DNA of 64,000 bases from Epithemia pelagica (GCA_946965045.2 OX337240.1:2232001-2296000), one strand, 5' to 3'. Shown: positions 1 through 60,873, counted from the first letter of the stretch. Notes: generated by a model not told the origin, from the sequence alone. A program made the numbers and translations.

Positions 1-1113
1 ATGTGTGGACTGTTTCGTAAAGGGATTGACTCGATCCACCGACAAGAATCCCACCAAAATGTATCTAGTCCCTTGCGTAATGGGTAAGCCTTCGTGTCGA
101 ATTGTGGCCGAATTGACCAACACATGGCCCACGGCTGGTTGTGCCACGGCAAACGGTTCCCAGTCCGACGTGGTTGTGTCGTCCTTGGAGTCGTCGCTTG
201 GAGGATGATGACGACTCGTCCGACGACCATGGCGCTTCCAAAATCGGGTACCACCTCCTTCAAAATCGCCATTTAACAAAATGTTGAAACTCACATCACC
301 ATTGTCGGTATGGGCATCCAAACGATCACGAATGCCCTCATCGTATCGGACCAGAAACAAATCATTGGCCCGAATACTTTGGAGAGAAATGCCATAGATG
401 CGAGCGAGCAAGGGTGCCAAGCGACGATTGAATCGTTCAGCCATCCAGTGTCGATCGTCATGCGTAAAGGGATCGGTTACCAAATTCAAATCTGTCGTTG
501 CGTAGGATGCATGACGGGCCTTTTGCCATCCTTGTGGTGCCTGGAGCAATTGGTGAGCTACATCCGACGACATTGTCGTGTTCTTGTCCTGGTTTTCGTT
601 CTGTGTAGTATCATGATTGATCACTGCTATGGCTGTTTCGGTATTGCGTTGAGCAACAGCCAAGGCTCGTGCCAACAACTCTTGACATTCGGCCTCGGTA
701 AACATGGGCGCTTCAAAGACACCTCGTGCCAACAAGGCATTGTTGGGGGAATCCACCATCAAAAGGTAGCACAGTGATACGACAGTCCCTACAAGAACCA
801 ACAACATCAAACTAAAATAACTGGAGAGTGGAGAAGTCTTGGGAGATGGTTTTGCTTGTTTCTGGCTGGATTTGGCCGTCTTCGTTGGACTAGATTTCTT
901 GGTCGAACCAGTGCTCCCTTGTTTTTCTTCTTCTTCATATTTGCGTGGATGACGGTCTTTGGCAAGAGCCGACAGTCCCAATCGAGGAACAATCATGCAC
1001 CAAAATACAAGTGCCGCACACAACTTGAGCGACAAGAGATATCGAGCTTCGTCATGCTGAGGCAAGGGGACTTGTAGCAAGCCTTCCCCCGCAAATTCCG
1101 TCGAGTCCACCAT
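1..1113 (-). CDS. 2OG-Fe(II) oxygenase (PLOD/P4H-like) membrane-anchored protein, paralog 1; 3' end runs off the window
   Basis: Not in the ORF track because it has no stop inside the window. Hand translation of sampled stretches from ATG 1113 gives MVDSTEFAGEGLLQVPLP...SPNNALLARGVFEAP...TTDLNLVTDPF...HTDNGDVSFNILLNGDFEGGGTRFW. This is colinear with 17860-19419 and has the HxD facial-triad motif. Confidence 0.85.
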   Translation of the reverse strand, partial: MVDSTEFAGEGLLQVPLPQHDEARYLLSLKLCAALVFWCMIVPRLGLSALAKDRHPRKYEEEEKQGSTGSTKKSSPTKTAKSSQKQAKPSPKTSPLSSYFSLMLLVLVGTVVSLCYLLMVDSPNNALLARGVFEAPMFTEAECQELLARALAVAQRNTETAIAVINHDTTQNENQDKNTTMSSDVAHQLLQAPQGWQKARHASYATTDLNLVTDPFTHDDRHWMAERFNRRLAPLLARIYGISLQSIRANDLFLVRYDEGIRDRLDAHTDNGDVSFNILLNGDFEGGGTRFWKRHGRRTSRHHPPSDDSKDDTTTSDWEPFAVAQPAVGHVLVNSATIRHEGLPITQGTRYILVGFLSVDRVNPFTKQSTH

Positions 1114-1288
1114 TCTTGCTTTTCAATACAACTGACTGAATGAACAAAAGAAACGTAACGACAAGGCAGGCAACGAGACAGGATAGAGATGAATCTTCGA
1201 AGACCACCACCTCTTGACTAGGTAGTATCGATGTATCTTCGTTGTTGCTTCGTCGATTAGATCTTTCACTTAAGATGAAGTATAGGAT

Positions 1289-1386
1289 TACCCCCCAGCG
1301 GGGGCGAGTATTTACCGGTGAATTCCTATACTCACCCCCACGGCGCGTCCCTCGAAATCGGCGATTTTCCAACTTTGAGACAAAAC
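1289..1386 (+). repeat. Left terminal inverted repeat of the AcademH-like element
   Basis: Blocks TACCCCCCAGCGGGGG / GTGAATTC / CTCACCCCCACGGCGCGTCC / CCAACTTTGAGACAAAAC match the reverse complement of 17200-17287 exactly. Confidence 0.95.
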
Positions 1387-1445
1387 CACATTCTCCACAA
1401 CACATTCATCACGGAGCCAACCTTGTCGTCCAAATAACAACCACC

Positions 1446-3590
1446 ATGGACCCTCCCAATCCCATCCGACCACATAACATCGTTCCTTCGGCTGTTACAG
1501 AACATTCGACGCGCTTGGATCCGCACCCTTTCCATCCGACGACGTCCTCCCAGCACACTGAATCTGACACGAACCGAACAGCCAACAACGAAACGGATGT
1601 ACCATCCTATGAAGCCACCATCGATGCCCTTTCCTCATTCAATGCCTTCTCGACCATCCCTTGTGATCCCTTGTCCAACGTTGGTGACCATCGGAAACTC
1701 TCCGAGTCCATAATGATGTGCTTCAGCGATTGGCATGGCAAGACTGCGCGACAATGGCAAATCGAAGCTTGCGAAGAAGTTCTTTGGCGGCACCTCCACC
1801 GCCCGTCTTCTGCCCTTTTGCGTCCTCTACTGCTTGTCCGGTCTACAGGCGGCGGAAAGTCGGCTGTAAGGGATGTCAGTGGTTTTCTCTGTGGCGGCAT
1901 TACGTTAACCATAGTCCCTCTGCTAAGCTTGTCAGCCGACCAAACGGCAAAGCTCTCCCAACTCGCAAGCGATCAACAATTAACCGGTCGGCTACATATT
2001 TTTAACCTCGACGTACTCCGATCCAAGTCTCTCAATGACACCCTTCGTTCCAATCTGGAGAACTTATCGTACAAGTCAGCAACCAGAGTGTCGTTGTTCT
2101 CCTCCCCTCAGAAATTGACCAACGACCCCTTGTGGCAACAAACAATCTGTACTTGCTTCCGGAACGGTACCCTCCGGTTGATTGCGATCGACGAATGCCA
2201 CCTTTATGCCTCCCATGGTGTGGAGTTCCGATCGGAATTCAGCGACTTGAAGAAGGTTCTTTTCCCAGTTGCCAACCGGCGGATCATCAAAGAACCCGTC
2301 CCAGTTCTTTTCATGACAGCTACCGCTTCCTCTTTGATGCTCCACGATCTTGAATCATTGACCGGTCTCTCTTTTCACCCAACCGACGACCTTGTGTGGC
2401 CGCGACACCATTCCGGTGTCCAAAGACGCAACATCTTTCTTGATTTGACGTTCCAAGACTCGCCCCTTCGGCGAATCAAAAGGGACGTTGTAAAAACCTG
2501 CCACGCCTCTGGAGGTCGGAAAGTTATGGTTTATTCCAATTCGAGAAAGGCCATCACTCATCTCTACGAGCAAACCCGTTCTCATCTGAATATGCTCGGC
2601 ATACAGAAAGACCTATTGCTCGTTCACGGCCTTATGTTCCGTGAACAAAAGTTCCATAACACGGAGCTGTTTGTGGGGAAGCCACTAGTGGAGGAATGCC
2701 CCAGCTCGAAACGGATCCTGCGCTTCGACCCAGTGGCTTACTTTGCAACTGCGGGTACTTCGAGCTCAGGTGTAGACTGCCATGAAGTTGACCGTGTGTT
2801 GTTTCATGGCTTTCCTCAGTCCATAGAGGATCTCCTACAATGTTCTGGGCAATGTGGCAGAGGCCCGGACGCCACTGCCCATAATTCTTCGTTCTGTCTC
2901 ATAGTCAGTCTGAACAGCCTTGTGTCCCTTCTTACTCGAATCTTTATCTTACCCAAGTATGCGACAGAACAAAACACCAAGCAACCCCCTTCCAGCGAAG
3001 CAACAAACTCTCTTTTCTCTCCTGAAGCTCTTGCTATCCGTCAATGGTATAATGTCCGCCGAATTCTTGCTATCTTGTGCTTGGATGATGGTCAGTGTGT
3101 CCATTACCGTCTTGAACGTGAGATGCTTCATCCTCATAGCGAGGCGGTTTGTGATCTACCAACGCATTGCGCTGGGGCCTGCTGGCGCTGCCGTACACTT
3201 CGGATTGCCACACCTTTTGATGCTCTTATCAATATCCAACAACTCAAACGATACCTCATTATGATGTTCATTACCCAAAAGCTTCCCCCCTCCCAACTGC
3301 TCCTACACAAGGATGTCTTTCTTGATGCCGTGATTGGATTCGAAACGGTAAATGCTGAAGGAGCCTCGACACGAGTCTTTCCTAAATCGGTGTTTGGTGT
3401 CATCACCAAGCATGTCATTAAGCAACGAACGAAAGCGCTCATTTTGAAGTGTTTCTGTGCTGGAATCCTTGAATCCGAAGTAGATGGTTCCAAGTTGCTC
3501 GCTAAACTCGGGTACTGCTCCAATGGCAATCCACGCCTAAATGACCCAATGATCTGGCAAGGATTCAAGGAACTCGATCCATCGGTCTAA
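1446..3590 (+). CDS. RecQ-like superfamily 2 helicase (transposon-encoded), 714 aa
   Basis: Motifs TGGGKS (I), IDECH (II), MTATAS (III), VYSNSRK (IV), QCSGQCGRG (VI), followed by a Cys/His cluster resembling RecQ zinc-binding. First ATG is 1446; the track's start at 1242 crosses the element end. Confidence 0.9.
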   Translation: MDPPNPIRPHNIVPSAVTEHSTRLDPHPFHPTTSSQHTESDTNRTANNETDVPSYEATIDALSSFNAFSTIPCDPLSNVGDHRKLSESIMMCFSDWHGKTARQWQIEACEEVLWRHLHRPSSALLRPLLLVRSTGGGKSAVRDVSGFLCGGITLTIVPLLSLSADQTAKLSQLASDQQLTGRLHIFNLDVLRSKSLNDTLRSNLENLSYKSATRVSLFSSPQKLTNDPLWQQTICTCFRNGTLRLIAIDECHLYASHGVEFRSEFSDLKKVLFPVANRRIIKEPVPVLFMTATASSLMLHDLESLTGLSFHPTDDLVWPRHHSGVQRRNIFLDLTFQDSPLRRIKRDVVKTCHASGGRKVMVYSNSRKAITHLYEQTRSHLNMLGIQKDLLLVHGLMFREQKFHNTELFVGKPLVEECPSSKRILRFDPVAYFATAGTSSSGVDCHEVDRVLFHGFPQSIEDLLQCSGQCGRGPDATAHNSSFCLIVSLNSLVSLLTRIFILPKYATEQNTKQPPSSEATNSLFSPEALAIRQWYNVRRILAILCLDDGQCVHYRLEREMLHPHSEAVCDLPTHCAGACWRCRTLRIATPFDALINIQQLKRYLIMMFITQKLPPSQLLLHKDVFLDAVIGFETVNAEGASTRVFPKSVFGVITKHVIKQRTKALILKCFCAGILESEVDGSKLLAKLGYCSNGNPRLNDPMIWQGFKELDPSV

Positions 3591-6345
3591 CAAACTTTCT
3601 TAGTATTAACTACGTATTACATCGTGCATTTTTTCACGTTTCCATGTCCTCCTTGTACGAAGCCAGCATATCCATGCAACGGTCTAGATGATGTGCAACG
3701 CCTGTTGTCTCCCTTGTATTCTCTGTCCATTCCACGTTCGACTGATCCTCCTCCATACCTTCCAGCCTATGGTAAAGCTTGTAGCGCAGGAAATGATGGT
3801 CTCTTTCCTTTCGCGCTGCATCCCATTGAAGGGACGTTACAACTTGCTTTTCCCCCATACGTTCCACGGCTCCTGCAATAAAATCTGTTGTTGCCATCCT
3901 ATTCATCTCCACAACCTTCATTCCCTTTATTGATGATTTCTCACGTAGTGTCTCCTTTGGTGAATCTTTCTTATCCACGGAATTGTCTGTCTCTGGAGCA
4001 CCGTCACTTCCCTCATCATTATCATCGTTGTCATCATCTTCGTTCGGAATTTCGTCTGCTTCCGCCTCCATATCATCAACTTGGGTTTCTTGCACTTCAT
4101 CCTCGTCTCTTTCGTCTCGGACTTCGTCATGTTCCATGTTGCTTGTTGCATCGGTATCCTCCATGGTAACTGTTGTATCAACAACAGTCTCTTCGTCCTT
4201 GTAGTAACAAGGAGCATCCTTCTCGACTTCGACGAATACCGATTCGTCGTCACTAAAGCACGTTAGTTCCTGGATTATCGATGAACCATCGTCATCCATT
4301 ACTTCAGCCAAGTCTATCTCTGAGTTCTCATCTGTTGTATCGCCCTCTTCTGCCGCATTCTTGCTCCCCTCCTCTTCATCTGGACCCTTGTCTTCATCTT
4401 CCTTGCACCGTTTAGATTTCCTCATGTTACGCATCATTGCGTCAACTTTCACTGGAACATACTTGTCCACCGCGTCGTTTTCAATTCGACCTTCGCCATT
4501 ACGCCTCACTCTCTTATGTACCTCCATTGTCGTCGCATCCAAAGCCCTCCAAAAGCGGTCTTTGTCGATCACAATATTGAGGTTCTCCCTTACATCGTGG
4601 CATTTGGCAAGCGTCAAGATTTCTGTCACTAGAACACGATTCAATCGACTGCTTGGACGAGTTGTTGTTTTATTGCGTTGTCCTGGGTCCGCCAGTGGTC
4701 CAGTCTCAGTAGTAGGCGTGTCAATGTCAAACGAATTCTCTAACGACCGTTCGTTGTATTTGTACTCAGCGTCGGCTCTCGTGCGAGTGTAGAATTCAAC
4801 GAAATGCTTTGCCCTCTGGCAGGCAGTGAGCATTTTGGAAACACGAACAAACGAAGCCTCAGTTCCGTTATGGTTCATACCTTTGAAAAAAGGCATTAAG
4901 CGCTCCATAATCTGGTCAAGCGCACTCTCTTTCTGGAACGTGTAAGGTGACCCTTTCTTTTGAAGTTTCGTTCTGTTGAGCCTGATGAGTTGCAGGATAG
5001 AAATAGGGATTCGATGATAATACATCTCAATAAGACGAAGCTGAGTAGCGAACGATTTATGTTTCTTTGTTGCGTAGAGTACTGGCAAATAATCAACAAC
5101 AACAGCTTCCATTGTCACCGCATCACCTTCTTGTTCTGCTTTACAAAATGCCAGGTACTTTCGCATAACAACCAGATAGTTGCATAGGTACCGGTGCAAC
5201 CAGTCCTTTGTCTCACGGACTTGGCGGTGCAAATAAGCCACGTAGTCGTTGGCTACAAAGATAGCCAATCCATCTGGCCCTTGTGATTTGAGGATTCGCT
5301 CAATCTTTCCAAATGTCATGGCTCTGTTGATGAAGATGTCAACCATAAGACGATCCAGTTCCTCGAAAACAATAACGGCAAGTCGATGAGCTAAACGATA
5401 GCTGTGTGATACATCTTGGGCATCCAGACGCTTCCATTTGAGCCTGTGCTGGAAGCACTGGAGGAAGCCTCCATAGAACAAGCGGTAAACGGAATCCAAC
5501 ATATGAAACCTAACATGTAGGTCTCCGTTAATAGGGACAATCCGGTGTAGGACCTGAGTGATTGCCATGGCCTGTCGGTATGCATTGCAAAATGACATGG
5601 TTTTAGCGTCTGTGATTGCCATCACATCATCAAAGAACTGGAAGATGCGGTCCAGCGACAGCCCATCCCCAACCAAGAACAACCACTTCTTCTCCCATCC
5701 ATCCACAGGCGCATAAATTTGGTTGGCTTCCTTGAAATACAAAAGACCATGTAGCACCATGAAATCTAATAAAATACCGGAAGCTCCAACTTTTGTGGTC
5801 TCGTCTAAAACGGACACTGGTAAGATGAGCAATTCTGCAGGGGCAGGTTCATGACGCCAGGACCGCACAACACGTCTTGGGAACTGTCGTGCCATTTCAA
5901 AGAGGTTTTCCTCACGATTTTTCCTTAGGCCATTCATGGCTGCCACAATAGCAGCCTTGCATGGATGACGGGCGAATTCGGTAGGTTGTAGTGTATAATC
6001 AGACCGTTGTCCTGGCTTTCTTTTTGTTGACAGGTAACGCTTAACATTCCAAAGCTCTCTGCAAGTTGTGTTGAGTTGTTGGTAGACGCGGACTCTCTTG
6101 CCAGAACAGTCGAACGGGTTGCCGTCTTTTTGCAAGTCTTCTTTATACGTCCCATGATATATGGATTGAATGACGTCCGCCGTTTGGAGGTCGAGTAATT
6201 GTTCCAAGGCAGGCATTTGGTAGGGTGAAGGGATGGCCTGTTGGAGGTAAGTTAATGCTGGCCGTTCGGTAAACGAATATACCCAGTCAGGGAAGATTGC
6301 CATGTGCATCGACATTAAGAATCTGGCTGTGACTTTGGTATAAAT

Positions 6346-7128
6346 TGTTAGAATTCTCACCGTCTATGGTGGTTAGATTCTACATCTCATCGATTCCCCA
6401 TGTCACATAGCCTCGTGCTATCGCATCATGCCATCTAGCTTCGAGCTATGTTCCCTAGCTTTGCGCTATATCGACCTATATTTCTTCGCAAATCATGAAA
6501 AGTGAGAATAGATTGACGAACTCACTCTCAAGACTAAACTGGGTCGTGCGGTATTACAACGGACATAAATTTGGCCGTTGCTCGGACATTATACTAACGC
6601 CCTAAGCGTACGCGCCCGAAATCATCGAGCGCGCCCAAGCGACATCCGAGCGCTGTCGGCATCTATCCGACCCAACGGTCTAAGTATCCCAAGCACGACA
6701 CACGATCACGCGAGACCATATTTCCATTCCCACAATCTCCAAATTGTCAACAAGCTGCGCGCCATGAAAACAACTATGCCAACCCAAAGCAAGAGCTGTT
6801 GACCCTGTATATGTTATCCATCCACATATACATGTCATATACATCACATGAATCAACTCCAACTATTCCAAACCTGTTGCCGCCAAGAACCTATGACACA
6901 TGACCCTTGGCAGGACCGAACATTTCACGTAGACCTATCGTAGTAATCAACACACAATCTAACAATATCACCATTTATCACATCTTCTTTTGTGTCCCAA
7001 CTATCCTTCTGATAGACTTCGACTTGCTTGCTTCTCTGACCCTGAGAAGCTTGTATCGGTTGGTGACCTACCTGATTGTCTGCTCTACCGAGCATCAATG
7101 TCCCTACGATTCAGAAAGAATTGTAACA
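6346..7128 (+). repeat. 5' LTR
   Basis: TGTTAGAATTCTC...GAATTGTAACA, repeated at offset +7601. One mismatch noticed (T6462 vs C14063). Confidence 0.97.
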
Positions 7129-7142
7129 GATTAACAGTCTCA
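7129..7142 (+). promoter_or_regulatory. Putative non-canonical primer-binding site (complementary to a tRNA-Asn anticodon arm)
   Basis: GATTAACAGTCTCA directly after the LTR with no TGG. Its reverse complement TGAGA-CTGTTAA-TC looks like a GUU anticodon stem-loop. Confidence 0.45.
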
Positions 7143-7164
7143 AAGCTTATTTCCTTGTGGTTTC

Positions 7165-7944
7165 ATGGATACTAACGAGCTTATCACTCCTGTACGACAG
7201 ATCTATCGAGCCAAACTGCATCCCGGGCAGTCCGATACCCTGGTGCAGCAGGAACTGGTGCCGACGCCGAAGGCAGCCAACACATCGGTCAACATCTCCG
7301 TCGACAGTTCCAACAGCAACCCATTCGAGACTCCAACCCAGCCTCACGCTCCGATCCCTGCGCCGTTGCTTCGGCCCCCGAGTCCGCCTCGTCGGCTCGT
7401 CCCTTCTTGATCCCGTCGTACCACCCGGTTGATTGCTGATCATATCAAGTACTTCCGTCAACCAACTTGTTCGACCTTCGATCCCGAGATCATCCGTGGG
7501 GAGACCCAGATCGAACGCCAGTTCCGATCGGTGACCCACATCGTCGACCAAGAAGACATTGACCGTCTGAACGACCAACTTCATCGTTCTCCGAGGCGTC
7601 GCCTCATCTTGGCCGCCCTCTCGGGCAACCCCATCCGTACTGTCCACCTCCGCTTCCTAACCTTCGAGCGCCCAACTGGATACTACAATACCATCCACGT
7701 CGTGAACGCGACGACTTGCCCTCTGCCTCCTAACGTTGTACGCCTAGATAACTACGTTGCCTACATCCACGAGGTCCATACCATCGAGGACCATCGTGCA
7801 ACTATCTTCCCTTTGCGTACCGAGGTCGAGAACCACCTGGCTGAAGGTGATACCCCTTCTCCTGTTGCTTGTGCTGCCCCATCTGAGCCTGGAAACGACT
7901 CTGATCATTTGGAAGAGAGTGGAGATTCGGAGACCGAAGCTTAA
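7165..7944 (+). pseudogene. Extra ORF of the copia element upstream of gag-pol, 259 codons with one internal TGA; function unknown
   Basis: ORFs 7165-7410 and 7429-7944 are in the same frame and separated only by TGA 7408-7410 plus six sense codons. Confidence 0.6.
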
Positions 7945-8264
7945 TTACTCATAGTTAACTCCCGTCCTCTCAAAACCTTTCCAAGACTTAAACTCAACGC
8001 ACATCCGGGTACCCTTGGTCGCACAACACGCCACACATTCCCGTCAAATCGCGAAAATTCGGCGAAAATTTGTTGAAACTCGGCGAAAATTTGTCGGAAT
8101 CAACGGAAATTTCCAGGAGTCGCACATCACAACACACATCCGGGTATCACATACGTGGCACATACGTGGCACACGTGGTACATCCGGGTTCACATCACAT
8201 CACACATTAAATAAACCACATCACACCGCACATTAAATAAACATCGAACCAACAAAATAACACC

Positions 8265-11200
8265 ATGGATCCTCAATCACCCAAGACACCTACGACTCCT
8301 AAGGGAGAAGATAACCAAGACAATGTCTCGGACACAGACCTATTCGACCACATCATATTTACTGTCTGCCAATTCTTTACCAAAGAAAGGGCCGACTACT
8401 TAATGAAGTGGATGAAATACCATGGTTTTGAGAACATTACCCATGTTATCTCGTATATGCAAACTAATACCGAGGAATCCATGAAGGAACTGACACAATA
8501 CAAGGTCAACAAACAGACACATGATCTACAAGGCCCCACAAGACAGCAGATCAAGCTCTTGGCTTATTGGGCCATATACAAGACCAATGAAATTCAAGAC
8601 GAGCTATCCAATAGCGACTGGATGAACCTAACGAGGAAAGAGTTCAACACTTGGAGGATCAACACAGATTTCTCTAAGGGACCACCTAGCCAAGTTCCAG
8701 TCTCGCCAATGAAGTCACCGTCATCTGTGAAATCTGTCAGCACAGTTACTGCCGCATCCCAATCTCAACAAGACCTTACAGCATTCAGAAAGGGAACTAA
8801 GCGCGACGCAACTGCATATGAGGTATTCAAGGATGAACGATACTACGATTCATTCTGGCGTGTATTCAAGACTACAGCTAAGGCTCAAGGCCTATCCAAC
8901 GTTCTGAATTTCAAATACACACCACCCCATGATGATGAGTATGCCGAAGAACTTTTTCAAGAGCAACAAGTATTTCTTTACTCCGTTCTTGTCCGTATCA
9001 TTCAGACTGACCAAGGTCGAGCCTATGTACGTGAACATGAACATGATGAAGATGTGCGTGCCGTATTGCAGAAGTTACACTCTTTGCATACCGAATCCGA
9101 CCTAGCAAAGCGAGAAGTCCTCCGTTTAACCAACTACATTTCCAATCTACGTCTTGACGACACATGGCGCGGAACAACACGTCAATTTCTTCTACACTTT
9201 CAAGAGCAGCTACGTTTGCTAGACAATCTAGTGACATTGTCTGATCGCATCCCTGATCATACCAGGATGACCTTCCTCATGCAAGCTGTAGAAAAGGTAC
9301 CTGATCTCCGCCGAGTCAAGATCTTGGATAATGTGGTGAACACCAAATCCGGTGCAAAATCCCTTTGCTATCAATCATACTTCCGTCTCCTTCTAGACGC
9401 AGCTTATGACCATGATCAAGCAACCCAGTCATCTGTTCATAGTCGCCGTCGACATGTCAAACAACATGAATCACTATATGGCCAAGATACAGATGCTGAC
9501 ATAACCTCACAAGATGATATGGAGTATCATGTCCACAACACCACAGCGACATCTGAATCTCCATCCTCTTCGTCCAAGGTTAGTCTACCGCGTGACCTAT
9601 GGTTCAAACTTTCTGAAGAAGATCGCAAGTTGATCATTGAGTATAACAAGATGATTCAAGCACCTTCATCAACAACACCGAGGAAAGTGCAAACACATGC
9701 CCTCAACATTGATCCGGAACCTGATCCTGACCCCAACCAAGTTGCATCTGATGACGACTCACCTGGCGTAGTCACTGAGCATCCAGATGATTCAGATCCG
9801 GTTACACAATTTATCAACCAAGCCATGACGACTGATATCAATCACCCGGCAACTGACCTGACTAGTGTTCTTTCTAACGCCAAGTCCAAGACGAGCAAGA
9901 AGGTTACTTTCAAAGCCAACATGCATAAACAAGCAGGACATGTTCCACGCTATTTGTTTTCCAGGAAATCTACTTTACCAGGAAATCAATTGATTGACCG
10001 TGGTGCTAATGGAGGACTTGCTGGTTCTGACATGCGCATCCTTTCTAAGACTGGCCGCCATATCACTATTGTGGGTATTGATAACCATGAACTTACTGGA
10101 CTTCCTGTCGTCACATGTGCCGCAAAGTTTGAGACCAATGATGGACCTATTGTTGGCACCTTCAATGAATATGCTTATTATGGAAAGGGCTTATCTATCC
10201 ATGCTCCTGGTCAATTCGAGCATTTCGGACTTGCTGTTGATGAACGATCTGTTAAAGTTGATGGTAAACAACGCATCACTACACTTGATGGTCGTGCTAT
10301 ACCCCTTCACATCAAGGATGGGTTAGCCTACATCCACTCCTTGGGTATCCCCAGTGACGATGACATGAATACCTTACCTCAGATCATCTTCACGTCACCC
10401 GACACATGGGATCCTGGTGTTCTGGACCATTCCTATTCTCCCACACCCTCTGACAATGATGCTGATTGGAAACACGTAAAGACTGATGGTAGTATGTCGA
10501 ACCATCCATATGACAACTATGGGGAGTACACTGATCGTGTTGTTTGTAACCTCAATCTCCTTTTGGATCTCCCATACGATCATGGACCTGACGACGCACC
10601 CTTCTTTTCTATCTATGCTGACGCAGAAGGTAATGATCCTACACTTCATGCCTCTGTCCACCGTCGTTACCAGGAAGCGTATGACTGGAAGAAGTTCCGT
10701 CCATTCTTTGGTTGGCAATCTGAAGATGTTATTGCCGATACGTTCAAGCACACTACACGTAATGGTAGCATTACTTTTGACCACGACACCCTCAAGAAAC
10801 ATTTCAAGGCTCGCAATCCGGTCCTTAATATACCTCGACGCCATGAACCCGTTGCTACTGACTCGGTTTTCTCCGACACCCCTGCTGTTGACCATGGCGG
10901 TAAAGTCGCACAAATCTTTGTTGGTCGAGATACTCTGGTTACTGATATCTATGGGATCAAGTCAACCAAACAGTTTGTCAATACTCTTCAGGACAACATC
11001 CGGTTTCGTGGTGCCATGGAGACTCTTATCAGTGATGGTGGTTCATCTCTCATCTCTCAAAAGGTCAAAGACATTCTTCGCACTTTGCTTATTGGGGAGT
11101 ATCGATCCGAACCTTATCATCAACACCAGAATAAGGCTGAAAACCGTTACCAGACCGTTAAACGTATGACCAACGCTCTCATGAATGCCACTGGTTGCCC

Positions 11201-13952
11201 TGCCAACACCTGGCTTCTTTGCCTTGAGTATGTCTGTGACTTATTGAACCATACATCGTCACCCACCCATTCCGGTCGCACTCCTCTTGAGGCTCTCTCC
11301 GGACGCCCACCCGACATTACTCATCTCTTGTTCTTTCCTTTCTGGGATGAGGTTTACTACCGTGTCGACCCCGCTGAACCCAATTCCGGTTCATATCCAT
11401 CTTCTTCTGATGAGAAACTTGGCCACTGGGTTGGTTTTGCTCACAACGTTGGTGATTCTTTTACTTGGAAGATTCTCACCCAGGATAACCAGATAATCTA
11501 CCGTTCTGCTGTTCGCCGTGTTGAATCCACTACACCTAACCTACGTGTGGATCGACCTTCAGGGGAGGATTCGTCTGAGAAGGATGACAATGATAAGCAA
11601 GCTGACACTGTCTTCATTCGCAGTGATAGTGAAGATCCATCCAAACCAATGCCCACGATCGATTTTGACGACATGATAGGACGCACATTCCTATGCAACA
11701 CAGAAGAAAATGGGGAGCGACACCGTGCACGTGTCATCAAACGAGTCATTGATCTTAATGAAGAAGCAACGAAACAGGAAGAACGTGTCAAGTACATCTA
11801 CCGAAAGACAAATTCTGATGTTGATGAGATGATATCCTATAATCAACTCATGGAGTATATCGAACGAGATAACCAAGCTCAAACCTCTGGAGATAATCTT
11901 TTCAGGTTCAGGGACGTCATTGCCCATCAAGGCCCACTGAACACAACTGATCCAGATTACAAGGGGAGCAAATATAATTTGCTTGTTGATTGGGAAACTG
12001 GGGAGACTACCTATGAACCTTTATCACTCATCGCCAATGATGATCCGATCACTGTAGCAATTTATGGAAAGAAACATGATTTACTCAACGAACCTGGATG
12101 GAAGCATTTGAAACGTTATGTCAAAACAAGCAAACGTCTCATTCGAGCAGCCAAACAGTCAAGGATTAAACAAGTTCACCATTCCGTCAAGTATAAGTTT
12201 GGATTCCAAGTACCACGCAATTATGAGGAAGCTGTCGCTCTTGATAAACAACATGGCAACACAAAGTGGCAGGATGCAACAGAATTAGAATTGTCACAGA
12301 TCCAGTCCTACAAGACATTCAAGGATTTTGGGAAAGCCATCTTCATTAAAGGGAAAGTATCCAATGCACCTGAAGGATATCATAAGATACGTGTACATCT
12401 TGTCTTTGACGTAAAACATGATGGACGACATAAAGCAAGACTTGTCGCAGATGGACATCTCACAAAAGAACCTGTTGAGACAATCTATTCAGGTGTTGTT
12501 TCCATTCGCAACCTCCGCATTGCCTTATTCCTGGGTACTTTGAATGACTTGGAAATATGGGGAGCAGATATTGGAAACGCATATCTGGAAGCCTTGACAG
12601 GGGAGAAAATTTTCATTGTCGCAGGACCTGAATTCAAGGAATTAGAAGGTCACATCCTGATTATATACAAGGCACTTTATGGATTGAAGTCATCAGGCGC
12701 ACGCTGGCATGATGTCTTATTCGATGTTTTGACAGACATGGGATTTTCACCAAGCAAAGCAGATCCGGATATCTGGATGAGGAAAGCACCTGGAGAAGAC
12801 TGTTACGAATACATTGCCGTATACGTTGATGACTTAGCCATTATTTCTACTGATCCTGGGAATATCTGCAAGATCCTGAAGGAGAAATACAACTTCAAAC
12901 TCAAAGGAGATGGACCTATTGATTTCCACTTGGGATGTTGTTACACCAAGGATTCTGACGGAACATTAGTAGCAGATCCAAGACGCTACATTGGTAAGAT
13001 GATGGACACTTTCGAACGAATCTTCAAGGAGAAACCCAAGAAAGCCAAAACACCTCTTATTGGTGGAGACCATCCTGAATTGGATGATTCTGAGCTCCTT
13101 GATGAAGAAGGTACTAGCCATTTCCAAACTCTGATTGGACAACTCCAATGGGTGATCACTATTGGTCGTTTCGACGTCTTCACCGCTACAATGACGCTAT
13201 CACGCTTTCGTGCTGCTCCAAGGAAAGGACATCTTGATAGAGCCAAGCGTATCTATGGATATCTTGCACATCTACCAGAAGGCGCAATCAGATTTAGGAT
13301 TGGAGAGCCTGATTATTCAAGTCTTCCTACCCAAGAATTTGATTGGACTCGCACTGTCTATTCGAATGCAAGTGAACGTATTCCTGAAGACTGCCCAACA
13401 CCACTTGGCCGCTATGTTACCACAACTCATTATGTTGATGCCAATCTCATGCATGACATAGTCACTGGTAAATCCGTCACTGCTGTTCTACATTTGTTGA
13501 ACGGAACACCTATTGACTGGTACAGCAAGAGACAGAGCACGGTGGAAACTGCTACCTATGGATCCGAGTTTGTGGCTGCAAGGACAGCAATAGATCAGAT
13601 TACAGAATTACGACATTCTCTCCGCTACCTTGGAGTACCTATCCGAGAGCGAAGTTACATGTACGGAGATAACAGATCTGTTGTGCTCAATGCAACCGTT
13701 CCTCATTCCATACTATCCAAGAGACACCATCTTCTGTCATACCACCGAGTTCGTGAAGCCATCGCAGCAAAGTATGTTGCATTCTACTGGAAAGATGGAA
13801 AGACCAACCCTGCCGATATCCTTAGCAAACATTGGGATTTCGTATCTATTTGGCCCATGCTCAAGCCATTGTTGTTTTGGAAAGGAGAAGTTCAAGACCT
13901 CAACAAATCCAATGATGACAAGGCTGAAACGACGAGTTGTGGGGAGTGTTAG
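8265..13952 (+). CDS. Copia Gag-Pol polyprotein, 1895 aa
   Basis: Protease LIDRGAN; integrase VATD...LISDGG...KAENRY; RT KARLV...YVDD; RNase H YVDANL...GSEF...GDN...NPAD. Confidence 0.97.
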   Translation: MDPQSPKTPTTPKGEDNQDNVSDTDLFDHIIFTVCQFFTKERADYLMKWMKYHGFENITHVISYMQTNTEESMKELTQYKVNKQTHDLQGPTRQQIKLLAYWAIYKTNEIQDELSNSDWMNLTRKEFNTWRINTDFSKGPPSQVPVSPMKSPSSVKSVSTVTAASQSQQDLTAFRKGTKRDATAYEVFKDERYYDSFWRVFKTTAKAQGLSNVLNFKYTPPHDDEYAEELFQEQQVFLYSVLVRIIQTDQGRAYVREHEHDEDVRAVLQKLHSLHTESDLAKREVLRLTNYISNLRLDDTWRGTTRQFLLHFQEQLRLLDNLVTLSDRIPDHTRMTFLMQAVEKVPDLRRVKILDNVVNTKSGAKSLCYQSYFRLLLDAAYDHDQATQSSVHSRRRHVKQHESLYGQDTDADITSQDDMEYHVHNTTATSESPSSSSKVSLPRDLWFKLSEEDRKLIIEYNKMIQAPSSTTPRKVQTHALNIDPEPDPDPNQVASDDDSPGVVTEHPDDSDPVTQFINQAMTTDINHPATDLTSVLSNAKSKTSKKVTFKANMHKQAGHVPRYLFSRKSTLPGNQLIDRGANGGLAGSDMRILSKTGRHITIVGIDNHELTGLPVVTCAAKFETNDGPIVGTFNEYAYYGKGLSIHAPGQFEHFGLAVDERSVKVDGKQRITTLDGRAIPLHIKDGLAYIHSLGIPSDDDMNTLPQIIFTSPDTWDPGVLDHSYSPTPSDNDADWKHVKTDGSMSNHPYDNYGEYTDRVVCNLNLLLDLPYDHGPDDAPFFSIYADAEGNDPTLHASVHRRYQEAYDWKKFRPFFGWQSEDVIADTFKHTTRNGSITFDHDTLKKHFKARNPVLNIPRRHEPVATDSVFSDTPAVDHGGKVAQIFVGRDTLVTDIYGIKSTKQFVNTLQDNIRFRGAMETLISDGGSSLISQKVKDILRTLLIGEYRSEPYHQHQNKAENRYQTVKRMTNALMNATGCPANTWLLCLEYVCDLLNHTSSPTHSGRTPLEALSGRPPDITHLLFFPFWDEVYYRVDPAEPNSGSYPSSSDEKLGHWVGFAHNVGDSFTWKILTQDNQIIYRSAVRRVESTTPNLRVDRPSGEDSSEKDDNDKQADTVFIRSDSEDPSKPMPTIDFDDMIGRTFLCNTEENGERHRARVIKRVIDLNEEATKQEERVKYIYRKTNSDVDEMISYNQLMEYIERDNQAQTSGDNLFRFRDVIAHQGPLNTTDPDYKGSKYNLLVDWETGETTYEPLSLIANDDPITVAIYGKKHDLLNEPGWKHLKRYVKTSKRLIRAAKQSRIKQVHHSVKYKFGFQVPRNYEEAVALDKQHGNTKWQDATELELSQIQSYKTFKDFGKAIFIKGKVSNAPEGYHKIRVHLVFDVKHDGRHKARLVADGHLTKEPVETIYSGVVSIRNLRIALFLGTLNDLEIWGADIGNAYLEALTGEKIFIVAGPEFKELEGHILIIYKALYGLKSSGARWHDVLFDVLTDMGFSPSKADPDIWMRKAPGEDCYEYIAVYVDDLAIISTDPGNICKILKEKYNFKLKGDGPIDFHLGCCYTKDSDGTLVADPRRYIGKMMDTFERIFKEKPKKAKTPLIGGDHPELDDSELLDEEGTSHFQTLIGQLQWVITIGRFDVFTATMTLSRFRAAPRKGHLDRAKRIYGYLAHLPEGAIRFRIGEPDYSSLPTQEFDWTRTVYSNASERIPEDCPTPLGRYVTTTHYVDANLMHDIVTGKSVTAVLHLLNGTPIDWYSKRQSTVETATYGSEFVAARTAIDQITELRHSLRYLGVPIRERSYMYGDNRSVVLNATVPHSILSKRHHLLSYHRVREAIAAKYVAFYWKDGKTNPADILSKHWDFVSIWPMLKPLLFWKGEVQDLNKSNDDKAETTSCGEC

Positions 13953-14729
13953 AATTCTCACCGTCTATGGTGGTTAGATTCTACATCTCATCGATTCCCC
14001 ATGTCACATAGCCTCGTGCTATCGCATCATGCCATCTAGCTTCGAGCTATGTTCCCTAGCTTCGCGCTATATCGACCTATATTTCTTCGCAAATCATGAA
14101 AAGTGAGAATAGATTGACGAACTCACTCTCAAGACTAAACTGGGTCGTGCGGTATTACAACGGACATAAATTTGGCCGTTGCTCGGACATTATACTAACG
14201 CCCTAAGCGTACGCGCCCGAAATCATCGAGCGCGCCCAAGCGACATCCGAGCGCTGTCGGCATCTATCCGACCCAACGGTCTAAGTATCCCAAGCACGAC
14301 ACACGATCACGCGAGACCATATTTCCATTCCCACAATCTCCAAATTGTCAACAAGCTGCGCGCCATGAAAACAACTATGCCAACCCAAAGCAAGAGCTGT
14401 TGACCCTGTATATGTTATCCATCCACATATACATGTCATATACATCACATGAATCAACTCCAACTATTCCAAACCTGTTGCCGCCAAGAACCTATGACAC
14501 ATGACCCTTGGCAGGACCGAACATTTCACGTAGACCTATCGTAGTAATCAACACACAATCTAACAATATCACCATTTATCACATCTTCTTTTGTGTCCCA
14601 ACTATCCTTCTGATAGACTTCGACTTGCTTGCTTCTCTGACCCTGAGAAGCTTGTATCGGTTGGTGACCTACCTGATTGTCTGCTCTACCGAGCATCAAT
14701 GTCCCTACGATTCAGAAAGAATTGTAACA
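13947..14729 (+). repeat. 3' LTR
   Basis: Near-identical copy of 6346-7128. Confidence 0.97.
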
Positions 14730-17199
14730 TAAATAGTGCTCTGTCCCTGCTGGAATTGGAGCTTCCGACCATCTTGTAGATTATCGAACACACACAACAG
14801 ATGTGTCACACGTCGAATTGCTAGCTTTGTTCGTTGGTCATAGGATGAAAGCCACTCTTCTACCCTGCGTTCCATCGTTCGTTTTGAAACAGAGATTCCT
14901 AGCCACACAGGAATCTGTGTCGCTAGGAGTGGATGTCCACAAGCATACTGAGCGAGGGAGAAGACCATACCAAAAGGGACCAACCGATGATTGTTTGTCT
15001 TTCGAAGCTTCATGACAAATTGGAAGAACACGTCCAATGTGAGACGTGGACGCATGAAAATTTGCTCGTTTTCCGTAAGTTCCTCTTCGAGCTTCTTCGT
15101 GTAGCCACTAATCCCCATTAGAGTGTTGAATTGTTGGGGAAGCATTGTCTCGAAGTCCTTTGCAAATTGCCGAAGTTCATATTCCGATAGGAACTTTTCA
15201 AATACATTATTGAATCGTCCAAAACAATCTTCAAGGCGCCGCATAACCCTCTTGTCAATGACTTCGCAAAAGGGCTGGACCGTAGATGGTTCTATGAGGG
15301 GCGGAGGAGGAATCGTCGTGGCGTGGTCTCGAAGCTGTTTAAGCTCTTCGTTGTGTACAACCTTTTGCTGGGCAGCGAGGGCATTTGATTGTAGGTGTTG
15401 CCAGACACCTCATAATTTTGCGAGCATAAATCGATCCCCTGTTGTTTCTTGCACGAGCCTATGAAGAAGAGTGGACCGATTGTCCCCTGCGTCTTTCAAA
15501 GCATTGAAAGTTGCAAGCCAGGGCCGTTCGGGATGGAAGTCGGCTTGGACAAATATGGCTTGGGGGTAACGAAACAACTCAAACCAGGAGAGATGTTCCT
15601 CAATACAATCAGAGGGGGGGGGAGGAGACGCTGAAATCCATCGACCCAAATATGGGCAATTTCAGGAAGATGCCATGCTGTTGTGTCTCAGACATGGCGG
15701 CGATAACGTCGGGAATGGGCCGGAAACCAGTTACCGCGTCTTTATCTGGGTTCCCATTGACCCAACCAAGTACTTGCTTATAAAGACGTCCCTGGCAACG
15801 AACGGTAGGCACGTTGTCCGATTGCAACGTTTGTTCCCATGCATCGAGCCATTTCTTGGAGTACCTTGGTGGTAGAAGCTCGTCATGAAAGAATAGGGCA
15901 ACTGGAGTCCCATCCTTGAGGAACCAAATGTCTTCGATGAGAAGGGTTGTTAACGAGAAAGACGTCACAAGATGCAATGACGAGTTGGATTGTTGTGGTG
16001 GCGGCTTCTGTGATGAATTGCCATCATCCTCGATTTCATGTTGCTTGCGTTTGTTGTTTTGTTGCTTATTGTAGCGTCGTTCTTTCGACTTCCCAGTTGG
16101 AGAACGGGCAACACCATTTGTGAAATTCTTGGCTCGTCTCATGAGTTGAGCACAATTGCCAGATGTCAATGTAAGGGTCTTTTTGCTGCCCTGGTGTTGT
16201 GGTGTCACAACAATCAACGGTACATTTCCAAGAGACGGCCCAGGAACTTTACAAGCAAGGTGTTCGATCCGGCGTAGGGGTAGGAGGAAGGTACCCTCGG
16301 TGATCAGCCGCGCTCCAACCGGTTGGGCTCGACTTGTACCGGACGCGGAGGAAGACCCCGTTGTAGACAACACACCAGCAGTCGTGGCATCGTGGGAGGC
16401 ATTGGTGCCAGCAAGGTCAGAGTCTGGTATATCAGAATCCTGAGGTGGAGTCGTATCATCAGGGTTGGTGGTTGTTTCTCGGTTGGTGGTTGACATACTG
16501 GTGCTTGCTTGATCCTCGATTGCAGATAACAGGTTGGTCGATTTGGGAGGGGACGTCTGTGTACCAAATCGTACCTGGCACAAGTTGAAGGAGAAGTTGA
16601 AGGAGGTGGACGACATCATGTTGCCATGGAGGGAAGGTTGGGCGCTTTGCTGGGGGTTGGAGTGTGCTTGTCGTCGGTTTGTATTGCCAGAAGGAGGTGA
16701 CAAGGGGGACGCAGTAGGTAAAGAAGGATGGGGAATCGGGACAAGGGATGGAGGAGCGGCTGTCCGGGTGGAGGGGAGCGTCGAAAGGTCACTTGCAATT
16801 AAGGTGGAGGGCTCCGATGTATTGGTGTTGTTGTTGTTGTTGTTCAACTGTGAGACTGTGGTTACCGGAGGCGGTTCGGCTGCAGCGCTAGCAGATGACA
16901 TGTCTTGAATGCAGGGAGGGGAACTGGTAGGATGCGACGAAGGATCAGGGACGGTATCCTGTATTGTCGAGACTGCTGGTTGGTTTTTGGCGAGGCTTGG
17001 TTGACCGTGCTGAGTTTTGCTTGTGTTGAGCTGTTCAGCACTCGGCTTGCGGTCATCCGCTTGCCCCAAAAGCTCATGAATCTCATGTTGAGAACGGCGG
17101 TGGCGTTTATGCGACGACGACGACATGGAGGAAGGCATATCAGGGAGCGGCACCTCCACTGCCGTGATAAATGAGGTGAGATTGTGTGTGTGGTTTGGA

Positions 17200-17287
17200 G
17201 TTTTGTCTCAAAGTTGGGAGTTTCAGGACGCGCCGTGGGGGTGAGAAAGAGAATTCACATCGAAATTTCCACCCCCGCTGGGGGGTA
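17200..17287 (-). repeat. Right terminal inverted repeat of the AcademH-like element
   Basis: Reverse complement shares four exact blocks (16, 8, 20 and 18 bp) with 1289-1386. Confidence 0.95.
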
Positions 17288-17859
17288 AGTATAGGATTCT
17301 GTGTACATGTCGACTGGTGAACTCATGTCCATCTGGTTCTGATGTTCCCCTTGGTCGCCTTATCTGGAATCTATCATGTCCCTGTGCATGCTTGAATGGT
17401 TAGCTCTTCTAGGAGGGAAATAGCTCCACAACCTTCCTACTCTGCCCCATTAAACAAACCAACAAAGCAACGAATAGAGCTCTCTATTGTGTCCAATGAC
17501 GCCATCTTCAATCTACCAGCATGGTAGAAACACAAAACTTTGCATCCCTCTACTAGCTGGAGAGGAAACCGCTCTCTCTAGAAGTAATGGATCACACGAT
17601 TTGAGAACCGATTCCAAAGCTTCGAACCAGTCTACGAGTTTCGATACCATGTTGGTCCAAATTTAATTTCGGCGCCAGTGGGCCACTGCTTCACATTTGC
17701 ACTCCAACCTGATGCTCCAGTTCTGCTTCTCCATTTGATTAAGAGAATGTCATACATATCGTTCTTTGATCCAGTCACTGACGATTGCCCAACAATGAAA
17801 AAATGGCGTTTCCATCAGACTGTCCTTTACAAAACTTTGAGTGGGAGAGCTCAACATGT

Positions 17860-20014: not shown

Positions 20015-21308
20015 TCACCCGTGGGACTTGGATATACAATCGCCAGCAACAGCGGCCCAAGCGATAACATCGTGGGACTTGAAAGAGACATACAGGTTTA
20101 AACCCATACGGCCCATCGGGAACAGCCCGTGGGACTTGCACAAACATAGAAAACGCTCCCCAGAGCTAGAGGAGCGGCCCAAGAACAAGCCAAACAAGAA
20201 CATGTTGGCTTGGGGACTTAAGTAAGGATTGTATGATCCTTTCGTGGTAGGACGATTGAGGGAAATGGCGGCGGCCGCAGCGGCTGCAGCTGCAGCTGCT
20301 GCCGCAGCTTCAGCCATTCGCTTACGTGCACCACACGTGCAGTTGCAGCAGCATCGAAAACCCAACGGCATTTGCCCTCCTGCAAGCTGACTTCTAGCGG
20401 CCTGGGCAGAAAGATCAAGGTTCCACAAGTGAAAAGGACTTCCTTCAAAGAAAGCCAGGCTTCCATCCAGATCCACATCGGGAATCGAAAAATTCCACGA
20501 AGAATCATCCGAAACCATGGATGCATTCGCAGTGTTGTTTGTCAACTGAGGGTTTGTATGAAATCTGGTCGGAATGTCTCCCAGGTGCGGCGGAAGAGAA
20601 GATTCATGCATTTGCTTTGTACTGGTGGAAGGGACCAGAATGTTACAGCCAACTAAACTGTTTGGATGGTCTTGCAATGACAATGTAGCCAACGTAGTAT
20701 CGGGCACATTACGACGCAATTCCTCAGGTACCGAAGACTCAAAATGGTCCTTCCAAGCCGGGTGGTAAAAGTCATGATCCTCAACCAAGGGCTTGTTAAG
20801 GTGTTTGTTGTTCTTGATCTTGCGACGGATCATGTTGCGAACCAATGAGCGGTGTCCACGTACAAAGCATAGATGAAAGTAGGCTCCTTTATCCTTCCCA
20901 TGAGCGAAGCGAGAAAAGCCATAAATGTTCAATTGTCGTTGGAAGGATGCATATTTTGTTTGATTGAAGAATCTGCAGTTGAACATAAGAAAATGAGTAT
21001 ACGTTTCTGAAGAAAAGCTCCGAGCACATGGCCACGTACCTTGGCATGATGAGCTCCACAAACTTTTTCGGTTGATACACCGTAAAGGAACGACCATGTG
21101 CTTGCCACGAGACAATACTCTGCAAGCCTTCCTTCTCAACCGCCTCCAAACATTCATGCAGACGCCACGGAAAAGGCCATGCCACACCACCTTTGGCGAT
21201 TGATTTGCCATCGTGCCCTCCATCCATTCCGGTTTCCATGTTGTACCGAGGAAGGTCTTCGAGGCTTGGCGAAGAACCAGGAGAAGTAAGTTCTTCAAGA
21301 GGAGTCAT
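20015..21308 (-). CDS. Heat shock transcription factor (HSF DNA-binding domain), 2 exons (intron 20973-21039), poly-Ala tract
   Basis: FPWRLHECL...IVSWQAHGRSF...MPR|FFNQTKYASFQRQLNIYGF...YFH...FVRG, with a GT...CAG intron restoring the frame. Confidence 0.88.
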
Positions 21309-58745: not shown

Positions 58746-59088
58746 TGGATGATGTTCATCCGTTGGAATTGGCTGTCAAAGTGAGAATGCGTCCATTGGC
58801 GTTTTTCTACGCTAAGTCCCGTCTTATATTTAACTAAAAACGCTTCAACTGATTGTCTCTATAGTGAATTTTTGGGCTTCTGATTTTGCGAGCAGTGCTT
58901 TTTGGCCATGCACGCGTTCGGGTTGGGGTATCAGGGGCTCGAAGTGCCAAACTCCTGCCGAATCTGCGCCGCTCACTTTTTAGTTTTTGGTTCCGCTCGA
59001 CGAAAACACACACCAACCCAAAGAGAGGTATTCGTTAATATCTGTTGTCTCGAAGTACTCACAGGTGAGAGAGTCAAGAACGACAAGC

Positions 59089-60873
59089 ATGAGTGCTGTT
59101 TCACATGCTTCAGAAACGTACGAGTTATGGGGTGCGGATGAGAATGAAATAACTCAAACTTCTTCCTGGCTGGAACGAAATGCTCCTTCCGGACGCATAC
59201 CAGAAGCACTGCTTGGCACTGGTACGTTTTTTGGAGGGATTGTTCGAGATTATAAGCATCGGCTTCCGTACTTTTTCTGGTCGGACTTTACCGATGGCTT
59301 TTCCTGGAAGACCAAATCTGCCGCCATTTTCATGTTTTGTGCCACGGTCACTTCCACCATTGCACTCGGTGACGTGGCCTTTCGAGAAACCAACGGCATG
59401 GTGGGCATTACCGAATACCTCATGCTTCAGGGCGTGGCTGGGTTGTTTCATTCCATCTTTTCCGCCTGTCCTCTTGCCATTCTACGTCCCACTGGTCCAA
59501 TTACAGCCTTTATGATTGATTTGTACAACTTGTCGGGATGGTTGCAAGTGGAGTACTATGCACTCTTGTCCTGGGTGGGATTTTGGGTCGGTACCCTTTT
59601 GATTTTGATTGCCGCCTTTGATCTGTCACGATTTATTGTACTTTGTACACGATTCTTGCATGACATTTACGCCGTCTTTGTTTGTACTATCTACATTACG
59701 GATGGAATCATGGGAGTTGTAGAACGCTTTCAAAAGGTGGAATGGGCCGAGGCATTCTTTGCCTTTTATCTGGCACTCTTTTGTATCCTCTTTTCTCTTG
59801 GATTCTACTATACGGATCGATCCACCATCTTTACGCAACGCATCCGTCACACTATATCGGACTATGCCGTACCTCTGGGTGTTTTGTTGTGCATATGGAT
59901 CAGCTATGCCGTGACTGACCATGTCCAAGTGGAACGTATTTCCATGCCACGAAACTTTGAACCAACGTATCCCTCCAGTGACTACGAACAAGAAGGCGGT
60001 GGAGATCAAGGCGACGAAGAAAAACGTGACTGGTTTCAAGGACCACAAGGTGGTGGTATGCTTGTGGTCTACGTTTCTGCCATTGCGGCCATTCCAATTG
60101 TCGCACTCTTTTACATCGATCACTTATTCTCATGTATTCTGTGCCAAAAACCAGAACTGGGACTTGCCAAGGGTGAATATTACCATTCATCCATGTTCAT
60201 TACTGGCATTTGTAATCTGATCCTGCCCATGTTTGGACTTCCTTTTGTCACTGCCTCTCTCCCCCACTCCCCGCAATTCACCAAGGCCCTTACAGACTAT
60301 GACAAGACAATCACCCCCTGGAAGGTGTTGTGTGTCCACGAATCTCGCATTGCTCCAATGGTGGTGTATGCACTGTGTTTTCTTGGTTTGGTGATTCCAG
60401 CAGTCCTGGAACGGTGGCCTGTCGGTGTGGTAAATGGAATCTTGACCTTTGTCGGCCTCCAAGGGATCCTACCGGGAACCGGGAACCAGTTGATTGATCG
60501 TTGTGTGTTACTCATTACGGCACCGTCCGAATTTGCCACGCTGCTCTCGGATCCCAACGATGGCAACAATCATCACCGCATTACCGCACCCTATCTTCAC
60601 CTCCCCTGGTATCGCATTCACATGTATACCTTTGTTCAATTGGCATGTTTGGCAGCCTGTTGGGGCATGAGATTTACGGGTCCTTTTTCGTTGGCCTTTC
60701 CTTTGGTGATTGTGGGGTTTGTGCCGCTTCGTCTCTACCTGTTACCCAAATTCTTTACCAAAGAGGAACTGGAATGTTTGGATTCCGAAGGTGTGGAACA
60801 ACAAGATTATCCACAACAGGACCTTCATGATACGAGAACGGGAACCAAGCGCCAAGAAGTGGAACTAAGCTAA
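59089..60873 (+). CDS. SLC4: SLC4-family bicarbonate/borate anion transporter, 594 aa
   Basis: DYKHRLPY..SDFTDG, AAIFMF...IALG, PLAILRPTGP, GEYYH, GLPFVTASLPHSP, ESRI, FPL..V..VPLR. Confidence 0.9.
   Translation: MSAVSHASETYELWGADENEITQTSSWLERNAPSGRIPEALLGTGTFFGGIVRDYKHRLPYFFWSDFTDGFSWKTKSAAIFMFCATVTSTIALGDVAFRETNGMVGITEYLMLQGVAGLFHSIFSACPLAILRPTGPITAFMIDLYNLSGWLQVEYYALLSWVGFWVGTLLILIAAFDLSRFIVLCTRFLHDIYAVFVCTIYITDGIMGVVERFQKVEWAEAFFAFYLALFCILFSLGFYYTDRSTIFTQRIRHTISDYAVPLGVLLCIWISYAVTDHVQVERISMPRNFEPTYPSSDYEQEGGGDQGDEEKRDWFQGPQGGGMLVVYVSAIAAIPIVALFYIDHLFSCILCQKPELGLAKGEYYHSSMFITGICNLILPMFGLPFVTASLPHSPQFTKALTDYDKTITPWKVLCVHESRIAPMVVYALCFLGLVIPAVLERWPVGVVNGILTFVGLQGILPGTGNQLIDRCVLLITAPSEFATLLSDPNDGNNHHRITAPYLHLPWYRIHMYTFVQLACLAACWGMRFTGPFSLAFPLVIVGFVPLRLYLLPKFFTKEELECLDSEGVEQQDYPQQDLHDTRTGTKRQEVELS

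Follow-up and report, generated by a model that had tools for sequence, protein, structure and literature searches.

AcademH transposons are among the least studied groups of DNA transposons, and why they need a helicase is a puzzle. Here, we examine a 64,000-nucleotide stretch of Epithemia pelagica DNA (GCA_946965045.2, OX337240.1:2232001-2296000; the window, along which all coordinates are counted unless another locus is named) and find that positions 1289-17287 most probably hold one copy of a two-gene, 7.6-kb AcademH-type DNA transposon. The copy spans about 16 kb as it stands and ~7.6 kb once a nested Ty1/copia retrotransposon is subtracted. An initial annotation had proposed an AcademH-like element, and this proposal is supported by terminal inverted repeats (TIRs), a RecQ-related helicase, a DUF6589-type transposase with a predicted DDE (Asp-Asp-Glu) active site, and target site duplications (TSDs) of 9-10 bp in five copies. 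In the literature that we searched, AcademH has been described in animals and fungi only. A family in an alga shows that the type has a wider range and was active recently; for AcademH this is a new host record, not a new kind of element. This one family includes an intact copy and a deletion derivative, along with a dated dead copy and an insertion site that segregates filled and empty, and its ends, two genes and target are natural material for assaying transposition both in the presence and in the absence of the helicase. The window corresponds to contig ctg1347l of the European Nucleotide Archive (ENA) assembly ERZ21939226.

Ends, target site and empty allele

The transposon starts and stops with TA...TA ends at 1289 and 17287. 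Both termini carry the 15-mer ACCCCCCAGCGGGGG (1290-1304 on the plus strand, 17272-17286 on the minus strand), which has only these 2 matches in 64 kb against 0.08 expected, and the left and right ends form an imperfect inverted alignment of ~110 bp with three conserved blocks. The left end (1289-1410, plus strand) contains the terminal block TACCCCCCAGCGGGGG, the subterminal block CTCACCCCCACGGCGCGTCC, the block CCAACTTTGAGACAAAAC, and a block seen at the left end only, AAATCGGCGATTT; the right end (17166-17287, minus strand) carries the terminal and subterminal blocks in inverted form. These blocks are kept at both ends of the three families described below: a terminal block TACCCCC(C/A)AG...GGG(T/C)GAGT, a subterminal block CTCACCCCCA.GGCGCG lying 45-70 bp inside the terminus, and a third block TTGA.ACAAAA, with an ACCCCC(C)A core common to the terminal and subterminal blocks. 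In all three families the block AAAT(C/T)GGCGATTT is limited to the helicase-side end, and the two ends are therefore distinguishable.

A direct repeat, AAGTATAGGATT, adjoins both ends (1278-1289 and 17287-17298). Reading it as a 12-bp TSD is rejected by a mismatch at the first base in two sister copies, L003 and L002, and an 11-bp TSD by a mismatch in L005, which represents a second family (same contig). The TSD is 10 bp, the sole reading that fits all five copies from three families: AGTATAGGAT in the window (1279-1288 and 17288-17297), GGGGGGTACC in L003, GGATAGGAAT in L002, GAGAGCTCCA in L005, and ATGGACTCA in L004 of the third family, which is 9 bp long, or 10 bp if the terminal A is counted. 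The initial annotation had described complete ends with TIRs and a 10-bp direct repeat with TA...TA termini across 1279-17297, which coincides exactly with this reading, and had called for further copies, four of which were found in the three families with TSDs of 10, 10, 10 and 9 bp. The L002 copy has inserted within a tandem repeat with a 13-bp unit (TACGGATAGGAAT, L002 9949-9971 and 14448-14485). Its TSD resembles that of the window copy in the common ATAGGA, which is not in the TSDs of L003, L004 or L005 and may be a hint of target preference.

The annotation had also set a test beforehand, namely an empty site with a single target copy, and this site is present in public data. Four public runs, all from one organism and one study, contain the left flank, and their contigs were aligned to window positions 700-6600. 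In three of them (X1, X2 and X4) a contig matches the window as far as 1289, after which it reads CTGTGTACATGTCGACTGGTGAACTCATGT, which equals window 17299-17328 exactly (the window reads CTGTGTACATGTCGACTGG... from 17299 onward). The order in the empty allele is hence left flank, one AAGTATAGGATT and, directly after it, right flank. Runs X1 and X2 have the filled junction (1226-1316) as well, so the site is both filled and empty in those samples. The filled junction reaches about half the flank depth (87 versus 158 in X1 and 50 versus 124 in X2, contig depth being a rough measure), which fits a hemizygous insertion in a diploid. Run X4, from a different sample (S3), has the empty form alone, with zero depth across the element. 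The insertion is recent and still segregating.

Other loose contig ends from these alignments reproduce the L003 flank, the L002 deletion junction (at window 5599) and a copia-free junction (at 6345), and are therefore independent confirmation of the L003, L002 and copia-free forms. An origin of the ends and the repeat in chance or in an assembly join, with no insertion at all, can be practically dismissed: the empty and filled alleles, both in independent runs, already refute it, the same ends recur in other copies at different sites, and shuffle controls were done for the inverted ends and the direct repeat. As further observations on X4, its contig has ~44 extra letters near window 1255, and over the element there are no contigs at >=95% identity beyond scraps of ~20 nt; the transposon family may be absent from the S3 strain.

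Two convergent genes and a nested retrotransposon

A RecQ-like helicase gene running convergently with a large transposase gene 43 bp away, as initially annotated, is borne out by open reading frames (ORFs) that end at 3590 and 3634. The helicase gene (1446-3590, plus strand) is intact: its ORF of 782 codons runs rightward to 3590 and has an ATG at 1446 that gives a protein of 714 aa. Pfam places DEAD and Helicase_C domains in this superfamily 2 helicase, and the motifs TGGGKS, DECH, TATAS and QCSGQCGRG are followed by a Cys/His cluster. As a single sequence against solved structures it matches the RecQ family only (RECQ1 at 4.7e-8, then BLM, RecQ, WRN and RECQ5). With a 17-sequence profile the matches rise to 4.7e-27 for BLM, 1e-24 for RECQ1 and 2.5e-20 for Escherichia coli RecQ; the range over BLM, RECQ1, RECQ5, RecQ, WRN and RECQ4 is 1e-13 to 5e-27, compared with ~1e-5 for DEAD-box and other non-RecQ helicases. 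The Cys/His cluster (C551, H553, C575, C579 and C582, invariant or nearly so) lies after the second RecA domain, and by our own reading of the sequence it appears to be placed like the RecQ zinc module; the Pfam RecQ zinc, RQC and HRDC domains were not detected in the helicase.

On the opposite strand, an ORF of 908 codons ending at 3634 covers the 3' part of the transposase gene (3634-6345, minus strand; 903 codons plus stop). It encodes the putative second catalytic D (VGDGLS), a helical insertion, the catalytic E (LDQIMERL) and an acidic tail. The 5' part (14735-17138, minus strand, with its ATG at 17138) encodes the putative first catalytic D (VFDNLQ) and is damaged relative to the sister copy L003: a +1 shift results from C9 at 15614-15622 where L003 has C8, a TGA stop at 15412-15410 replaces an arginine codon, and there are in-frame deletions of 9 bp and 21 bp.

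The two parts are separated by a Ty1/copia long terminal repeat (LTR) retrotransposon (6346-14729, plus strand; RVT_2 at 6e-25 and a weak integrase match in Pfam), which fills half of the 16 kb. Its LTRs (6346-7128 and 13947-14729) are 783 bp each, begin and end with TG...CA and differ by one mismatch, its gag-pol ORF (8265-13952) encodes 1895 aa, and a 5-bp target duplication, TAAAT, flanks it (6341-6345 and 14730-14734) where L003 has a single TAAAT. The copia element is young. It was inserted inside the transposase gene at approximately residue 819, between the first and second catalytic D, and by coordinate arithmetic the pieces that flank it are in frame. The nested copia and the damage to the transposase were left unmentioned in the initial annotation. 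Given the copia, the stop codon and the frameshift, the element is non-autonomous despite its complete ends. Two ORFs between the 5' LTR and gag-pol (7147-7944), of 166 aa on the minus and 171 aa on the plus strand, have no Pfam match. Summed contig depth over the copia LTR is ~50,000-100,000, compared with ~125-160 for the unique flank, and the copia family, or its solo LTRs, seem to be very abundant.

For the full-length transposase, the searches and the fold prediction used the intact L003 paralogue (1721 aa). An AlphaFold model of L003 residues 640-1400, built on a 38-row alignment, has a mean predicted local distance difference test score (pLDDT) of 88.4 and a predicted template modelling score (pTM) of 0.87, and shows the order of an RNase-H-like DDE core. 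In model numbering, D163 lies on strand 1 (hhhDNxQ; invariant in 33/33 filled rows) and D406 after strand 4 (GDGLS; 38/38), and a helical insertion (454-636) precedes a helix with E660 (LDxxxE; 38/38). The predicted catalytic residues in L003 numbering are D802, D1045 and E1299. An exhaustive structural aligner ranks Hermes first (Z 8.5 over 296 residues), followed by simian immunodeficiency virus integrase (7.6), the P element transposase (7.5 over 355 residues) and Tn5 (7.2), and nearly all of the top 50 matches are DDE transposases, integrases or other RNase-H-like domains. At such middling Z-scores, the matches are taken as evidence for the fold class, not for the family.

Sister copies and the helicase-transposase partnership

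The helicase has ~17 paralogues with 52-68% identity on other large ENA-sourced contigs, and every locus inspected belongs to the same assembly. For annotation, the element explains the ~17 RecQ-like/DUF6589 gene pairs in this assembly, which would otherwise be called as host genes. The 90% identity cluster of the window helicase has two further members, L003 and L002. The L003 element (9574-17212, 7639 bp) is intact, with identical termini and uninterrupted ORFs of 714 aa and 1721 aa. Window 1289-6345 aligns with L003 9574-14630 at 98.6% identity and gapless, and window 14730-17287 aligns with L003 14626-17212 at 97.2%. In L003 these alignments share one TAAAT, and L003 is therefore the uninterrupted form of the copia target. 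L002 (9972-14447) is 4476 bp long and has lost most of its transposase to an internal deletion; it retains the full helicase ORF (called as 753 aa) and the last 644 transposase codons.

A set of three called genes (98, 294 and 104 aa) occurs twice on the upstream side of the L003 element, at L003 1170-2877 and 7625-9332, ~6.4 kb apart; this doubled set may be a segmental duplication or another repeat. In the window itself, the host genes near the element (20015-21298 and 58987-60873) include, by Pfam, those for an HSF-type DNA-binding protein and an SLC4-type bicarbonate transporter.

The pairing of the two genes extends well beyond these copies. A convergent helicase is also found in both other families of the same assembly and in the distant relatives L006 and L007 (Joint Genome Institute (JGI) metagenomes), L008 (a Logan run), and L009 and L010 (ENA metagenomes), the L010 helicase being 30% identical to that of the window (E 2e-23). 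The window and L003 helicases are 98% identical, with a ratio of nonsynonymous to synonymous substitution (dN/dS) of 0.26. Between families dN is 0.28-0.43, and dN/dS is not computable because synonymous sites are saturated. The helicase tree and the transposase tree both recover ((L003,L004),L005), at support values of 97-100; their branch lengths are similar, and the deeper nodes are unresolved in both.

From these sequence comparisons we conclude that the helicase is an old, selected component and a long-standing partner of the transposase. It could instead be passenger cargo, a captured host RecQ paralogue that plays no part in transposition, and the deletion copy L002, which kept its helicase and lost most of its transposase, would fit such a role. 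We consider this highly improbable, given that the pairing and the convergent layout hold across all relatives examined, even at a helicase identity of 30%, that the two genes diverge in step, and that the helicase is under purifying selection.

With the helicase as a working partner, a tentative mechanism can be outlined. The gene at each end starts ~150 bp inside the terminus, in a promoter-proximal position, and would be transcribed inward, the helicase from the left and the 1721-aa DDE transposase from the right. By analogy with other DDE enzymes, the transposase would bind the repeated ACCCCC(C)A blocks in the ends, which are candidate binding sites, excise the element with its RNase-H-like active site (D802/D1045/E1299 in L003) and integrate it at cuts with a stagger of 10 bp or, on occasion, 9 bp. 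The helicase most likely unwinds or remodels DNA at the transpososome, where it might open the ends, separate the 9-10 bp of staggered target or dismantle the complex. In the window, the element inserted into AGTATAGGAT on one haplotype, and a copia element later split the transposase between its first two predicted catalytic residues. To move now, this copy would need transposase from an intact one such as L003.

Placement among known transposons

The initial annotation had suggested a DUF6589 search as a check, and the domain is found. With a Pfam cut-off of 27 bits, the 3' piece of the window transposase scores 29.9 (3.1e-7), L003 scores 26.7 and relatives score up to 41 (E to 1e-10). Searching the ESM Atlas by shape retrieves a Cnidarian DUF6589 cluster (TM-scores 0.60/0.73 over 530 residues) together with a Mucoromycota cluster, and searching it by language-model features retrieves DUF6589 clusters of Arthropoda and Mucoromycota at 0.95. 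An exhaustive profile search with the transposase yields 1114 proteins at E <= 1e-3 and 158 at E <= 1e-30. Ten long matches among the best 150 were looked up, and the sole informative source name was Pedinella sp. CCMP2098 (transcripts). Word-based protein searches, with a single query and with a 12-sequence profile, gave matches limited to ENA assemblies and metagenomes, and no named animal or fungal protein.

Several points weigh against the AcademH assignment or against details of it. The placement was made through DUF6589 as a proxy and not through curated Academ sequences, with DUF6589 inferred to be the Academ core, and the DUF6589 scores of this family (29.9 and 26.7) are borderline. 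A Foldseek search of the transposase model against the PDB returned nothing significant, and the Z-scores from the structural aligner are middling. A distant relative with an equal two-gene layout, L006 (9636-16998, JGI metagenome 3300021915, with L007), has different termini, CACACTG...CAGTGTG, and an 8-bp TSD (ACTTACTC), so that TSD length is not uniform in the wider clade. No RNA data turned up. As to the damage in the window copy, the C9/C8 frameshift could be a long-read homopolymer or assembly error, an explanation that does not hold for the stop codon or the copia.

These points leave room for a separate lineage at superfamily level, with a remotely DUF6589-like transposase and an independently gained RecQ-like helicase, which would be AcademH-like without membership. 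The word-based searches that reached only ENA-assembly and metagenome relatives, the single named relative (Pedinella) among those looked up, the borderline score and the empty Foldseek result would all fit such a lineage. However, DUF6589 matches recur at E down to 1e-10, the model overlays the Cnidarian DUF6589 cluster over 530 residues, and AcademH as reported (PMC10045372) agrees with this element in its pair of genes, its affinity to RecQ and its TSDs of 9-10 bp. We therefore regard a separate lineage as unlikely and retain the AcademH-type assignment. It is conceivable, if rather doubtful at present, that the elements from the diatom, Pedinella and marine metagenomes make up a separate deep clade alongside animal and fungal AcademH, and that this clade is still active. 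If true, the transposase-RecQ partnership either is older than the split of the major eukaryotic groups or has crossed between them. Activity would be indicated by the intact master copy L003, the insertion that is polymorphic between samples and the one sample possibly without the family, and the clade would be a living test system for the role of the helicase.

The transposases of hAT (Hermes) and the P element are the top structural matches, and their RNase-H-like core likewise has a large helical insertion ahead of the catalytic E. They produce 8-bp TSDs; Pfam finds no hAT dimerisation or THAP domain here, the Z-scores are only 7.5-8.5 and there is no sequence similarity. hAT is rejected on the 10-bp TSD and the missing hAT domain (Pfam), the likeness to Hermes being at the level of the fold only. 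KolobokH and Helitrons are also helicase-bearing. Helitrons encode a Rep/Pif1-type protein and have neither TIRs nor duplications, and are rejected on ends and duplications. The TSD of Kolobok is TTAA (PMC9587614), and Kolobok is rejected on the 9-10 bp TSDs of varied sequence found here.

Within Academ, AcademX and classic Academ presumably share the transposase superfamily with the present element. AcademH has TSDs of 9 or 10 bp, whereas AcademX has TSDs of 3 or 4 bp and an XPG nuclease (PMC10045372). AcademX is rejected, as the TSD here is 10 bp and an XPG domain was not found by Pfam. AcademH has been recorded in Basidiomycota, Ascomycota and Mucoromycota (PMC10799480), and the supplements of that study mention neither DUF6589 nor Academ. 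Among the papers that we searched, none places Academ in diatoms or stramenopiles. The 2020 study by Kojima (Mobile DNA 11:15) reportedly treats AcademH as a lineage of the Academ superfamily in animals and fungi.

Compared by description, the present element differs from known AcademH in its host, a diatom-like alga, in a wider clade that takes in Pedinella and marine metagenomes, and in the 8-bp TSD of its distant relative L006. It shares with AcademH the TIRs, a large DDE transposase whose catalytic triad is predicted to lie on an RNase-H-like fold, a separate RecQ-related helicase gene (profile matches from 1e-13 to 5e-27), and TSDs of 9 or 10 bp (10 bp in the window, L003, L002 and L005; 9 or 10 bp in L004), and its transposase belongs by fold and family to the DUF6589 type of animals and fungi, with relatives in Cnidaria, Arthropoda and Mucoromycota.

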